Source of the DNA: Felis catus
Taxonomy: Eukaryota
Assembly (NCBI RefSeq): GCF_018350175.1
Contig: NC_058369.1
Coordinates: 18,166,001 to 18,230,000, forward strand
Direction of reading: 5' to 3'
Length of the DNA: 64,000 bases
Shown here: positions 39,701 to 45,700 of the stretch, one piece after another
Layout of the letters: every line of letters begins with the position of its first letter
How positions within the stretch are numbered: the first letter of the stretch is position 1
The notes under the pieces: generated by a model
What the model was told of the DNA's origin: nothing
What the model saw: the letters and a program-made list of their open reading frames with translations, nothing else
Database searches by the model: none
Translations under genes and position numbers: made by a program

Positions 39701-42700
39701 GGAGGCCTGATTTGTGCTGGCTGTGTAGCCAGGGGCCAGAGTCGTGTCTATTGCTGGTCCTTATTGGCTGGCTGGAGGGATTTACTGGGCACTCAGCCAG
39801 ACCAGCACCTATCTGCTTGCTTGGAGTGACTTCCCACCACCCTGGCAGGTGCCCCCTGATTCGGCACTCCCTTCAAGAGCAGCAGGGGGCACTTTCAGAA
39901 GGCCAACAAGAGCTTTAGCCCATTTTCTTACTATTTAAGGTAAATGAGTAACTTAACACCAGTACACAAAACAATTTATCTTAAAACCATGACTGCTTTA
40001 TCATAGGATTTCCAAGTCAGTTCAGGAAAACAATTAGGCAGTTACTTAAGACCACTGTGTTCTTGACAAACACTGGAGGCCCAGAAATAGGGGAAGAACT
40101 TTTTGTGTGCATATAAGTTCAGATTTGTAAGCAGCTTAAGACAATTTTCTGCATGGACCTCTCTCCACCCCCTGTGCTTTTGCATGGGCCTACAGCTTGA
40201 GGCAGTCTGTGTGTGGCTTGACAAGTAGCATCCTGCCCAGAATGAGCAAAGCCTGAGGCTTTGCACCTGCCCTGAAATAGATTGGGCTGCTGGGGCTTGT
40301 GGGCATTAGCCAGGCTGTCATCCCAGGCCTGGGACAGAAAGGTGGTCTTGCCTATCCAGCACACACAGCTGCCAGGGAGCCAGCCTCCTTCATGTCTGGG
40401 CAGAGCACTATAGCTCAGGAAGGGTCCCTTTAGCGTTGATCACAGAAGGGTTTATGCCCTGCTTGGGCTGTTCCTGGGGCTGGTCTATAAGTATCCATGA
40501 AGGGCAGCAGATAGAGGGTTTTATGTATGTCCAGCCAGGGCGGGACATGGTTTGTATGGTTGCTGCTGAGGCTGTGGCTACAAAGTCCCAGGCTCTTCCT
40601 GCATTAACTCCTATTCTGGGCACTGGTGATGGTGCCACCTGCACACCGCCAACTGCAGATTTCTGTGACCTTGGCTCCAGGCGTAGGCTGTGGTTACCAG
40701 CAATCGATGGCCCTGCACCTCCCCGCTTAGCACGTAGGTCTCAGCATGCCTTCCTCGCAAGAGGTTGTGCATGCATGTGGCATCCAGCTGCAGCCAGCGA
40801 CGCAGAATAGGTGCCAGTTCCACAGCAGGCAGTGGGCCTGCCTTCAGCACCTCTAGCCCGGAGTCTAGGTTGCAGTCTGAGAGGCCAAAGGACGAGCCGT
40901 TGCATCGGGAGAGCCTGACCTTCACTGCTGAATGGGACCAGAGGAGTGGGGTGATGTGCAGGGCTTCTAAGAATAACCCCCCACCCCCCACCGCCTGGTG
41001 ACCCATACCCTCTTGTGATGCTCTACCCTTAATCAGGATCCTAGGGAAGGGCTGAAGTCCTGGCGGCCACTCTCCTAGGCAGATTTGTTTGGTGTGTTGT
41101 TTTAGCAATGCCAAGCTTATTAAAGGCATTTATTTTGTAGCTTTAACCAGGTATAGCATTTAAGTGTCCCCTCTTTTCATCTGTCTTACCCAAGCTGGGA
41201 GCTGGGATGGAGGCACTTGTAAGGTGGGTGTAAGGAGTACTGGACGCTAGGGATGGGCTCACCAAAGTCGCTGGCACAGAGCGCTTCCAGAACCTCGTTG
41301 GATGAGCGGGCGTCCTGCAACTCGCAGTCCCTGCAGCTGGCGCGCGGCACTGGGGGGAGGGGGGGAGGGGCCGAGTGAGGCTCCGCCAGCCGAGAGTGGG
41401 GGAAGGGCCGTCAGCGCGGGCTGGGGGAGCCCTCCCATGGGTCCCTCGATCTTCACCCTTTCTGAGACCTGCTGCTGTGGCCAGTCCCTGTCTTCCCTAC
41501 CAGAGAGACCCGTGTACCTGGCCCTGCGGGGAGCGGCTTGGAAGGGTGGGGCGCTACCCGTGGACATGGCCTGGGGGCCGCGCGGGGACTCACGTGGGCG
41601 GCCCAGGCGGGAGCCTACGGAGACAGCCGCGACGCAGAGGCTGTGCCCGGCGGGGAAGCGGCCGCAATGGAGGATGGCGGGCCAGGGGTAGCCGTAGCAG
41701 GCCATGATGGGCGCACAGCTGGCCTGCAGGGCCTCACACAGGCTGCGGCACGGGTAGATGAGCCTGCGGAGGTGGGGGGAGGGGAAGTATCGGGTGGCCG
41801 GGCGCTCAGGACTTCCTGGCCCCTGGGCTGGAGCTCCTGTCCCGTCCCAGTGCAGAGGTACAGCCAGTGACTCCACGGTTGCTGGGCAACGACACATGGT
41901 CACCTGGCAACAGCCCTCAGCCCCGCAACCTCTTCCCAGCGTTTAGGTCTTACATCCCCCACCGTCCTCGCGTGGTGCTCGCGTGGCTCGGGCCACTATC
42001 CCGCTTTCCAGCGCACCCCGCCCCCCTCCAGCCATGGCGGAAGTCCACTGCCGGGGAGAGGATTGTATGCGAAGGACCCTGCACTCGGGGCCTTCACTCC
42101 CCCATTTCGGAGGGAGAAAGCAGAGCCCTCCCTCTTGTCCTGAAAGGCCTGCAGGAGACTGCCGCTTCTGGTCGAGGCTGGGGTTGGCAAAGAGCGGAGG
42201 CCTGATCATTGGATTCTGAAAGAGCTCATTCTTGCTGCTACTGGCGTGGTCACCCTGAGGCTCTGGGAAGGTCCCTCACTCTGCAGAGAAGGAACTGAGG
42301 GAGCCGTTCACGGGATAGGTTAGGCTGGGGAAGAGGAATCAGCCTTGCCATCTCTGGACTCTGGGAGAAAAGGCCCCCAGATGAGATGTGGCTCCGTCTC
42401 TTGCTGGGATCTCTTGGGCAGAGTTTCCACGCCCACTGGAGAGGGGCTTCTGCCCCGCCCCCCAGCCAAAAACAGCCTACCCACTTGTCATACCTTGTTG
42501 ATGTTCAAGAGCCCTTGAGGATTCATGGGTCCAGAGGTGCTCACCATGGATGGTCCCTTACCTATGTCTCCTCTGTCCCATAGGCACCTGCTCCCCTGTG
42601 CCAGGAACACCCTGACAAAACAATTCTTCATCTTCATTTCCCACCCCACCCCTACCAGCACCTAGCATGGATAGGTATACAGCAGTGGTTAGTGAACAGA

Positions 42701-45700
42701 CCCTGGCAGAGGAAAGGCCCCCCACCCACCCTCACCTAGGAGCCCCTGCCCTACCTGTCAAGGCACACAGGGGCAAAAAGGGAGCAGAGGAAGAGGCGGA
42801 CATCAGGGTGGCACTCCCTGGCCAGCAGGGGCAACCAGCTGACTGACTGCTGGACAGCCTCAGTTGCCGTGTCATGATCCAGCAAGTTGGGCAGCTGCAT
42901 CTCTGTGTAGCCAATGTCATGGCACAGCGCCATGGCTTGGGGAATAGGCATGCACCGTGTGGGGACCCAGGGAGCCCCTACCCCACTGTCACCCCACAGC
43001 ACCACCAGTGCCACAAACAGCCACAGCCTTTGATCCATCACCTGCTCTGTCTGCCTTGGTCTCAATGAGTTGAGGTTGAGGGCTTTATAGGGCTGCACGC
43101 ACACCCCAGGAGGCAGTGTTTGTGCAGCCTCCTAGGTGCTGGGACCCATCTGCTTAGGCCCCAGTGTGCTGGCCTGAGCCATTTGCATTTGATTAGCACA
43201 CTGCAGGGGACTGTAGAGGTTGGTGGCATCTCCTTTGGGTCTACGGATTACCAGCACTTAATAAACTGAAGAAACCTGGGCCTGTGTTTTCTTTTCTTTT
43301 TCTGGTTTACTTTTCTTGTTTATTGTTTAAACTATCAGGAGGTGACTGTTGACTAGCAGTTTGGTGTCATCCATTGTCCAGTGCTACCCCTGCCTCCCCC
43401 AGTGGATGGCTCATACCCTTTCTGGGTTTACTGGGCTGAGGGGTCAAGCAGGCCAGAGTGGGGGGCCTTTGTCCTGCCTTTAGCGTCATCACATCTGGGT
43501 AACCTACCCATGGAAGCTGAATGTGGTTGTGAGCATGGACTTTGGAGTGCAACAGCCTGGGTGGCCCTGAGCAAGTTGCTGATGTCTCTGTACTTGCCGT
43601 GAGTCATGAATAGGAAGGCAAACTGATGGGGCCCTTTTTTCTAGGATGAGTATAGGGATTAAGGAGTTGACGATGTGATTAGGACAGGGTACAGAGTCTA
43701 TACCACCTAAATGTGATCTGCTGTGATAACCACTAAAAATCATTTTAGTCCTGGCTCTGAGCAGCCATTTTCCTTCCTCTTGGCAATGACCGGAACTTCA
43801 TGCTGGGAGTGTAACCCAAAGAAGTGGTAGACCACGCTGCAGTCCTGAGGGGTCACTGTGATGGTGTGGCCCTGCCTCCACCTCTTGGTGGCCTCTTGGT
43901 CCCCATCTAAGGAACTCTTCTTTCCCAGGAATGAGGGAATGTAGCTCCTAAAAGTGCGTGGGGACATTGGGGTGTGGGACCCCCAGGTGTGAGGCTCACT
44001 TTCCAGCTCATCGAAGCTGCTTGTGAGGCTGGTGTGGTGGCATCCAGCCAGGCCTGACTGGCTTTTACTCGGGCTTAGAGGCATGACATTCAGTGTACAC
44101 TTGTTCCCAAAGCAAAGGACACCCAGAATGTCTTCCCAGAGCATCTGTCAAAGACCTGAGTGCCCCCCACCACCACCACTGATGTGCCAGCACTGGGCAT
44201 CTCAGCCCTGGGCAGAAGACTTGTGCGGAATAGAGGGCAAGGACTGGCCTACAGCACTGAATGTTTTACACTTTGTTTTTATTTGAACAATTCTGAAAAG
44301 CAAAATTGAAAGCAAAACCCAGCCACCATCATCCACTTTTAAATATATACCAAATAAGAAGTGGAGGTCAACCCTCTGGCCTTCAGTCCCACTGCAAGGT
44401 GGGTTAGTCCCTATCCAGCTTAGCTCTGGCGAGCTTTCCAAGACTCCTCTGGGACGTGTGTTCTCTCAGCATCAAAGAAAGAAGCCCCACGTTCCAAATG
44501 CTGGCCAACCTTTGCAAGACAACTCAATCTTGGGGTCGGAGTCCAGAGTAGAGGTAAAGGGGTGTGTGAGGTCCTGACATGGTGATCACCAGGGGACAGA
44601 GAGTACCCTAGAAACTCTGCAGAGAAGGTACTGGTTGCATCACTGCCTGGGCTCAGCCCTCGGCTTCACCCACCTCCTCTCCTGGCAGAAATCCCTGGCT
44701 TCCTGAGTGATGAAGAGTGTCGGCTCATCATCCACCTGGCCCAGATGAAGGGGCTACAGCGCAGCCAGATTCTGCCCACTGAAGAATACGAGGAGGCAAT
44801 GGGCACAATGCAGGTCAGCCAGCTGGACCTCTTCCGGCTGTTGGACCAGAACCATGACGGTCGCCTGCAGCTCCGCGAGGTTGGGATCCTGGGGTCTGGA
44901 ATAGACACAGGGTGGGAGCGCCCTGAATTGTCTTTCTGGTGGCCTGCTCAGCCCTGGCCCTGAGAGTCAGGTGCCACCTCAGATCAGCTTGGGCATGCTC
45001 AGTTCCAGAGGCCCCCTCCTTCCCTGGAGAGCCCCTGGCTGCCCTGGGAACCCCAGAGGATGGCAGGAGAACCCCCCCGGGGGTGATGACATTTATTGCC
45101 ACAGTTCCTGGGTGGTGCACCATCTGTGATCTGGATTCCTTGCTGCCACGGCTGGGGTCCCCACAAAACCCATGGTGGAGGGGTGGCAGCTCTGAGGTAG
45201 CCAGAAGTCTGCATCTCTCTTTTACATGCCCCTCACTCACACCAGGCTTCTGACAGAGGTCTTGGCAGGGTATGTGGTCCCTTGCCTATACAGAGAATGC
45301 CTCACTGAGCCTGGGCTTCTTTGACGAGCTTAGTGGTCATGCTGTGGCCAGCCCTCCCCTTGGTGTCTGTTCTGTTTGCACTCAGGCTTTGGCCTCCCCA
45401 CCTCACCTTGGGTATCTGAGTGGGATACAGTGCTGTCCTTCACTCTGCACCCAACCAGCTGACGGTGCTCCCCATGGAGGCCACAGTCCCAACAGGGCCA
45501 GGAATGCCTATGGCCTGCAGGCCTCTTAACTATCTCCCTGGCCTCCTCTCCAGATGCCTGTGGGCCTTTCTGCCTACCATCCCTTCAGCTCAGGGACCTC
45601 AGGCTCTGTCCTGTGTCCTCACCCATACCCCATCACCTGAACCCTTAACCTTTACAGCAAGAACTGGGTGACTGTCTATGCTCTGGGGGCCCCATCATTG

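Follow-up and report, generated by a model that had tools for sequence, protein, structure and literature searches.

A probable orthologue of Crescent lies antisense in P4HTM intron 2 of the domestic cat, under selection that appears weakened in the cat lineage

Background

Crescent (Frzb2) is an sFRP (secreted Frizzled-related protein) of the organizer and anterior endoderm, known as a Wnt modulator and a competitive inhibitor of Tolloid (PMC9437010 and references therein). Together with Sizzled, it was found to be absent from all eutherian genomes available to Kuraku and Kuratani in 2011, even by tBLASTn, and its loss was placed before the eutherian radiation (PMC3296468). A structural paper of 2022 gives mammals sFRP1-5 only (PMC9437010), and reviews as well as primary papers describe both Sizzled and Crescent as missing from mammals. 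We analysed a stretch of 64,000 nucleotides from the domestic cat, Felis catus (NC_058369.1, positions 18,166,001 to 18,230,000; 'the window', to which all coordinates below refer), in which a preliminary description had placed a Crescent-like gene, antisense within intron 2 of P4HTM. The question raised by this locus is twofold: does a placental mammal possess Crescent, and if so, is the gene still in working order?

Our literature search found no paper naming a placental Crescent, and a search for P4HTM together with crescent returned nothing relevant. We report that the gene is probably the domestic-cat orthologue of Crescent, a four-exon, TATA-box gene antisense in P4HTM intron 2, with a whole reading frame and with selection apparently weakened in the cat lineage.

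Results

An open frame in four exons

The coding region is read from the minus strand. Coding exon 1 (43038-42755, 284 nt) starts with an ATG at 43038, in the context GTGATGG, and encodes a signal-peptide-like N-terminus and the beginning of the cysteine-rich domain (CRD), up to Cys92-Leu-Asp94. Intron 1 (42754-41764, 991 nt), CpG-rich in its 3' part, separates it from exon 2 (41763-41594, 170 nt), which supplies the remainder of the CRD, including Cys138 and the Crescent/Sizzled-specific Cys117 of the motif MACYGYPWP. Intron 2 of the sFRP gene (41593-41350, 244 nt) is followed by exon 3 (41349-41263, 87 nt), where the linker and the start of the NTR domain are found, with Cys157 (the interdomain partner), Cys160 and Cys176. 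After intron 3 (41262-40928, 335 nt), exon 4 (40927-40611, 317 nt including the stop codon TAG at 40613-40611) encodes the body of the NTR. According to its translation and the alignments, this last exon carries the glycosylation sequon N190-G-S, Cys232, Cys283, and Cys276, which is specific to the cat.

The three introns are all of the GT..AG type. Read directly on the minus strand, the donors are CAG/GTAGGG for exon 1, CAC/GTGAGT for exon 2 and TTG/GTGAGC for exon 3; the acceptors of exons 2, 3 and 4 end in CCGCAG, CCCCAG and CATTCAG, respectively, each with a long pyrimidine tract on its 5' side. The four exons total 858 nt, that is, 285 codons and a stop, and none of the three codons split by introns (AG/G for Arg95, C/TG for Leu152, G/CA for Ala181) is a stop; the frame of 285 codons is therefore open. 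The phase check of the joined frame consisted of this arithmetic and of exon-wise translations. The latter equal the protein given in the preliminary description, which had claimed four GT-AG exons of matching phase without stop or frameshift. Similarity searches were run with single exons or with database proteins. Runs of N are absent from 40611-43038, the closest one being at 36164-36311.

A pattern scan revealed a TATAAA at 43084-43089 (minus strand), 51 nt 5' of the ATG, which is a candidate core promoter. A CpG-rich stretch at 41200-42200 (GC 0.65-0.72, observed/expected CpG ratio 0.52-0.67) covers exons 2 and 3 and the 3' part of intron 1, and in this part of the intron lies an X-box-like palindrome, GTTGCCCAGCAAC, at 41878-41890 (minus strand). 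The stretch with its palindrome coincides with the alternative start of an annotated isoform, X1; it may serve as an internal promoter or belong to the regulatory elements of P4HTM. We conclude that the locus holds a complete Crescent-type coding unit, equipped with promoter-like and splice signals.

Domains and diagnostic cysteines

Exons 1 and 2 each passed the Pfam Fz threshold alone (E = 2.4e-14 and 6.3e-9, respectively). Among solved structures, Xenopus Sizzled was the best match both for exon 1 (E = 8e-23) and, through its NTR, for exon 4 (E = 2.7e-11). The Pfam NTR model matched neither exon 3 nor exon 4, and the NTR was recognised through Sizzled instead. Since exons 1 and 2 match Pfam Fz, and exons 1 and 4 Xenopus Sizzled, each on its own, the four-exon frame is more than a product of chance. 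The N-terminus has an arginine at position 4, a hydrophobic core at residues 5-15 (Kyte-Doolittle value 2.78) and then the small residues DSGVGA; by hydropathy, it qualifies as a putative secretory signal peptide. For the cat RefSeq protein P0314, the AlphaFold2 model (pLDDT 73.5) gave Sizzled (5xgp) as top Foldseek match, with E = 1e-22 and an alignment of 251 columns that spans the full length. Fz matches, Sizzled matches and hydropathy together agree with the sFRP architecture of signal peptide, CRD and NTR that had been proposed at the outset.

The pieces of the cat protein align to Crescent without gaps. The ten canonical cysteines of the CRD (Cys29, 39, 76, 85, 92, 100, 104, 111, 128 and 138) are present, and align with Sizzled cysteines 27, 37, 74, 83, 90, 98, 102, 109, 126 and 136. 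The disulphide scheme of Sizzled includes the bond Cys115-Cys156 (PMC9437010), and all 16 cysteines of this map are kept in the cat, including Cys117 and the Cys157 of RASC. From these conserved residues, an interdomain disulphide of the Crescent/Sizzled type, Cys117-Cys157, is predicted; such a bridge is found in no other sFRPs except Crescent (PMC9437010). Two places distinguish the cat protein from SFRP1/5: the extra CRD cysteine, Cys117, stands in MACYGY where SFRP1/5 have MEAYGF, and the NTR has the single Cys232, in DATC, where SFRP1/5 have CPC.

Mutagenesis has established that Asp92 and Glu44 of Sizzled are required for BMP-1 inhibition, and of the neighbouring Thr93-Phe94 pair Phe94 is reported to be important for it (PMC9437010). 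The first two residues are conserved in the cat, as Asp94 and Glu46. The position of Phe94 is more variable: the cat and chicken Crescent have Leu there, the other placentals have Val, Xenopus Frzb2 has Tyr, and the tortoise has Phe.

The gene groups with Crescent

Used as a protein query, the exon 4 region retrieved this gene from other mammals, where it bears the annotation 'secreted frizzled-related protein 5-like'. When the full-length camel orthologue (P0005) was used as query, the nearest named relatives outside mammals were chicken 'crescent' (P0035) and Xenopus 'frizzled related protein 2' (P0032, P0037), and these ranked above hundreds of other sFRPs. A tree was then computed by a careful run of IQ-TREE under LG+C20, with 42 rows, the cat being represented by P0314; Sizzled was sampled from fish only, tetrapod Sizzled and SFRP2 being left out. 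Crescent and Sizzled form a clade with support 100/100, apart from an SFRP1/5 clade (96/94). The placentals, cat included, form a clade of their own (100/100), sister to the marsupials (97/95), and this therian clade is nested, in the order of the species tree, among the Crescents of chicken, alligator, tortoise and squamates. Fish Sizzled is a separate long branch. A Gopherus protein (P0195) considered as a possible tetrapod Sizzled was rejected, being of SFRP1/2/5 type with MAAFGF and a CAC pair.

If the database names were to be followed, the gene would be a paralogue of SFRP5, or of SFRP1 or SFRP2, as 'SFRP5-like', 'SFRP1' and 'SFRP2' are the labels given automatically in RefSeq and UniRef. 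These names are uninformative, because chicken 'crescent' and Xenopus 'frzb2' bear the same ones in UniRef. The tree refutes this reading, splitting the gene from true SFRP5 and SFRP1 at 100/100. Over 250 residues, the cat protein is 63% identical to chicken Crescent and 58% identical to Xenopus Frzb2, compared to 33-41% for SFRP1/5; its CRD also carries the extra cysteine, and it is without the CPC pair that SFRP1/5 have. We therefore hold the paralogue reading to be almost certainly wrong.

Sizzled deserves closer consideration as the possible orthologue, for it gave the best match in the PDB (in which Crescent has no structure to compare with) and is represented in the tree by fish sequences only. 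Identity to Xenopus Sizzled is 40%, against the 58% and 63% reached with Xenopus Frzb2 and chicken Crescent. Motifs of the Crescent type are present, while those of the Sizzled type (PRSEDWxPLLQTGCHPQ, CLDTF and LACQG) are absent, and the therian clade falls within amniote Crescents in species-tree order. Orthology with Sizzled is thus very improbable. The assignment to Crescent rather than SFRP1-5, made earlier from a pair of motif blocks and an additional CRD cysteine said to match Xenopus and chick Crescent, holds good in the tree, where the cat groups with chicken crescent and Xenopus frzb2, and the alignment confirms blocks and cysteine alike. The phylogeny that had been called for thus places the protein with Crescent and apart from SFRP1/5 and fish Sizzled, on a sampling that is without tetrapod Sizzled and SFRP2.

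Crescent in other mammals

The exons of the window are 100% identical to the cat RefSeq protein XP_019676902.2 (P0314, 250 residues), named 'SFRP5-like isoform X2', with the same three junctions. The existing 'SFRP-like' label suspected in the preliminary description is therefore real: RefSeq uses 'secreted frizzled-related protein 5-like' in the cat and in many other mammals. Among felids, annotated orthologues were found in Felis and in two Prionailurus species; among other carnivores, in a hyena (partial), the meerkat, mustelids (otter and mink, 285 residues), true seals and a fur seal. The list extends to camels, alpaca, a mole, emballonurid bats, pika, rabbit, dugong and 11 marsupials, and one camel database entry of 2013 is titled 'crescent precursor'. 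Full-length models of 285 or 286 residues (otter, mink, camels, alpaca, two Saccopteryx bats, pika, rabbit) are 81-92% identical to the cat protein.

Since conserved copies were gathered from several placental orders, the loss of Crescent is not a trait shared by eutherians. To judge from these sequences, the loss is patchy, having occurred lineage by lineage and not at the base of the placentals. A partial protein labelled Homo sapiens (P0057, hCG2040380, 269 residues) is 70% identical to the camel Crescent-like protein over 85% of its length, which suggests a recognisable relic, or a gene, in human; the earlier statement that human has no such gene is accordingly doubtful.

Constraint among placentals and in felids

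The contribution of selection was assessed on a set of invariant columns, that is, 90 of 250 columns that are unchanged in 16 non-placental Crescents, from sharks to marsupials. Mustelids, seals, the mole and the bats show only three changes at these columns, all common to every placental, and most placental clades have no private change there. This is indirect evidence that most placental lineages have kept the protein under constraint. Eight independent full-length models point the same way, having stayed at 285 or 286 codons and at 81-92% identity with the cat since the orders radiated. Rough values of omega, obtained from assumed neutral rates, would be about 0.2 for camelids, mustelids and seals, and 0.4-0.7 for felids.

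Several observations weigh against the reading of the cat gene as a whole, working Crescent, and they concern the ends of the gene, the felid protein and the divergence of placentals in general. At the 3' end, a pattern scan of the minus strand detected no canonical poly(A) signal in the 950 nt that follow the stop codon. The first AATAAA lies at 39651-39656 (minus strand), 955 nt downstream, and nearer to the stop there are weak variants alone, CATAAA at 40520-40525 and 40451-40456. At the 5' end, the cat RefSeq models are without a signal peptide: X2 begins at Met36, and X1 within intron 1. In terms of the window, X2 is without the N-terminal part at 42931-43038 (minus strand), and the start region of X1, at 41764-41903 (minus strand), reads into exon 2. 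The signal-peptide part given by the ATG at 43038 is also present in the otter, mink, camel, bat, pika and rabbit models. The gene name in the cat annotation is wrong, and its models are N-terminally incomplete.

As for the protein, 6 of 21 felid-private replacements fall at invariant columns, compared to 4 of 94 in five other placental clades (Fisher P = 0.0024). The six are R48Q, A80V, V107L, G243E, R276C in the cat and C138W in Prionailurus. The cat itself has G243E, A80V and R276C, the last of which brings the cysteines to 19, the new one being unpaired and at a distance of seven residues from the C-terminal disulphide. Of the five canonical disulphides in the CRD, one is abolished by C138W, which the two Prionailurus species share. 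Beyond felids, the meerkat (Suricata) carries C160W, and its frame reads on past the place of the lost stop codon; the model of the northern fur seal is fragmentary with a divergent C-terminus. The models with probable disablements in relatives of the cat are P0318, P0002, P0003 and P0016. The model of the Iriomote cat retains intron sequence. A relative-rate test on the whole protein, Felis against caniforms, gave 13-14 changes against 5-9, which is not significant (P = 0.1 to 0.4); only the test by site class was. Selection on the gene nonetheless appears, from the distribution of these replacements, to have weakened in the cat lineage.

One may then ask whether the cat copy has already lost its function and is turning into a unitary pseudogene, its frame being open only because the release from constraint in Feliformia or Felidae is too recent. 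The felid-private changes behave almost as if unconstrained, with 29% of them at invariant columns where random hits across columns would give 36%, the share in the other clades being 4%. Between Felis and Prionailurus viverrinus, 5 of 250 residues differ, with three of the differences (A80V, C138W, R276C) at invariant columns. Two feliform relatives have probable disablements, Prionailurus with C138W and Suricata with C160W and the loss of the stop. By a rough estimate from assumed neutral rates, the extra felid changes would amount to 10-15 million years of neutral drift, through which a frame of 858 nt would stay open by chance in about 1 case in 10. On the other hand, the cat gene has no stop, frameshift or damaged splice site; none of its 16 canonical cysteines is missing, nor is Asp94, Glu46 or the N-glycosylation sequon; the overall felid rate is not significantly above that of caniforms; and R48Q is shared with camelids, in which the gene otherwise looks constrained. 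We consider loss of function in the cat quite possible, somewhat short of an even chance. That the cat protein is still functional is about evenly poised, because of the felid pattern and because the frame may, at the chance just given, be open by luck.

The earlier proposal that felids keep an apparently functional sixth sFRP can thus be divided. An intact Crescent gene is there; its functionality is the weakest part, because felids show a pattern of relaxed constraint, with C138W in two Prionailurus species. Nor is retention peculiar to felids, since the gene is found in the marsupials and in six or more orders of placentals. Disablements in other felids had been named as evidence that would count against the proposal, and the felid pattern, with C138W of Prionailurus, comes near to this.

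The last group of observations concerns all placentals. In the IQ-TREE analysis, the placental stem measures 0.62 changes per site, five times longer than the marsupial stem (0.12). NTR lysines number 2-4 in placentals, compared to 8-15 in other Crescents, and the net charge of the NTR is 0 to +7, compared to +4 to +13 (0 in the cat, with an isoelectric point of 7.2). The basic C-terminal Crescent motif VVVNKAYAWxKKNRN..KWKHH(R/K)C is altered, and a Cys189/Cys199 pair has been gained in a variable NTR loop in carnivores, lagomorphs and the dugong. The loss of lysines may follow from the high GC content of the region (0.6-0.72 across exons 2 and 3) or may reflect a change in matrix binding. Because of the long stem and the lysine loss, the activity of the placental protein may differ from that of frog Crescent.

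This could be taken further, and the placental gene regarded as functional in a role other than that of Crescent, acquired through the burst on the stem with the fold retained (for example, by altered matrix binding, partners or expression). A long stem followed by conservation among orders is what such a change would leave, and the shifts in lysine content, net charge and C-terminal motif go in the same direction. Yet the lipid-binding fold of the CRD is kept, as are the surface residues of this domain that have been linked to BMP1 inhibition (Asp92 and Glu44 in Sizzled), and the lysine loss may be a mere consequence of base composition. We regard a changed role as unlikely, and retain the reading of the gene as an orthologue of Crescent under weakened selection in the cat.

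The host locus

P4HTM is encoded on the plus strand. Its coding exon 2 (36591-36671, ends approximate) matches residues 38-64 of PDB 6tp5, the human transmembrane prolyl 4-hydroxylase (E = 1.1e-9), and its coding exon 3 (44688-44918, ends approximate) matches the same structure up to residue 140 (E = 1.8e-36). The sFRP gene, flanked by these two exons, is therefore nested in antisense orientation in P4HTM intron 2, as first described. In the open reading frame listing, further P4HTM exons continue to about 50039. Runs of N in the window are at 1101-1296, 7547-7683, 21996-22167 and 36164-36311, and the last one breaks P4HTM coding exon 1, which is GC-rich.

A gene situated downstream of P4HTM has a first coding exon that is short (50425-50736, plus strand) and a very large exon of WD40 repeats (54047-56545, plus strand), with an open frame of 832 residues. 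This WD40-rich gene is consistent with WDR6, which we take to be the usual neighbour of P4HTM.

Discussion

By analogy with its frog and chick counterparts, the cat protein, if expressed, should act like Crescent. Once secreted, it would insert the CRD loop tipped by Asp94 (Asp92 of Sizzled) into the active-site cleft of BMP1/Tolloid; the protease being blocked, Chordin would be spared and BMP signalling lowered. The CRD would also be expected to bind Wnts. Whether many placentals outside primates and rodents (carnivores, camelids, moles, bats, lagomorphs and sirenians) still use a working Crescent in this way, as an endogenous inhibitor of BMP1/Tolloid and a modulator of Wnt, is nearly balanced in our view, and tilts slightly towards the negative.

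If they do, rabbit, ferret and perhaps cat would be ready models, and repeated, independent losses, now under way in Feliformia, would be a natural experiment on the dispensability of Crescent. A conserved copy stands behind the name 'SFRP5-like' in several laboratory and farm species: rabbit, ferret or mink, camel and cat. Two questions become testable as a result, namely whether mammals have an endogenous Tolloid inhibitor of the sFRP type, and what permitted its repeated loss. The first bears on a practical matter, for the development of Sizzled-based BMP-1 inhibitors has been argued for partly on the ground that mammals lack one (PMC9437010). That Crescent persisted past the eutherian ancestor in several orders is of moderate to high interest for evolutionary developmental biology and for the biology of BMP1/Tolloid.

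Among known systems, SFRP1/2/5 are the mammalian sFRPs closest in sequence and the source of the database names. They have in common with the cat protein the CRD and NTR architecture and several CRD motifs, but they form a separate clade, lack the extra CRD cysteine, have the CPC pair in the NTR and a longer C-terminal tail, and are only 33-41% identical to it. Sizzled of Xenopus (Szl, PDB 5XGP and 7EL5), a nanomolar inhibitor of BMP1/Tolloid, is the best structural match, with the same disulphide scheme and with its Asp92 and Glu44 conserved in the cat. It differs by an identity of 40% only, by its separate branch in the tree, and by Thr93-Phe94, where the cat has Arg-Leu. The closest likeness is to Crescent/Frzb2 of chicken and Xenopus: the cat protein belongs to the same orthology clade and length class and follows the same plan of signal peptide, CRD and NTR, and shares the 16 cysteines, among them the interdomain pair, as well as the CLD-R loop with its accompanying glutamate and the N-glycosylation sequon. 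What sets it apart is the long placental stem branch, the lysine-poor and less basic NTR of placentals, the Cys189/Cys199 pair added in carnivores and lagomorphs and, in the cat, the further private Cys276.

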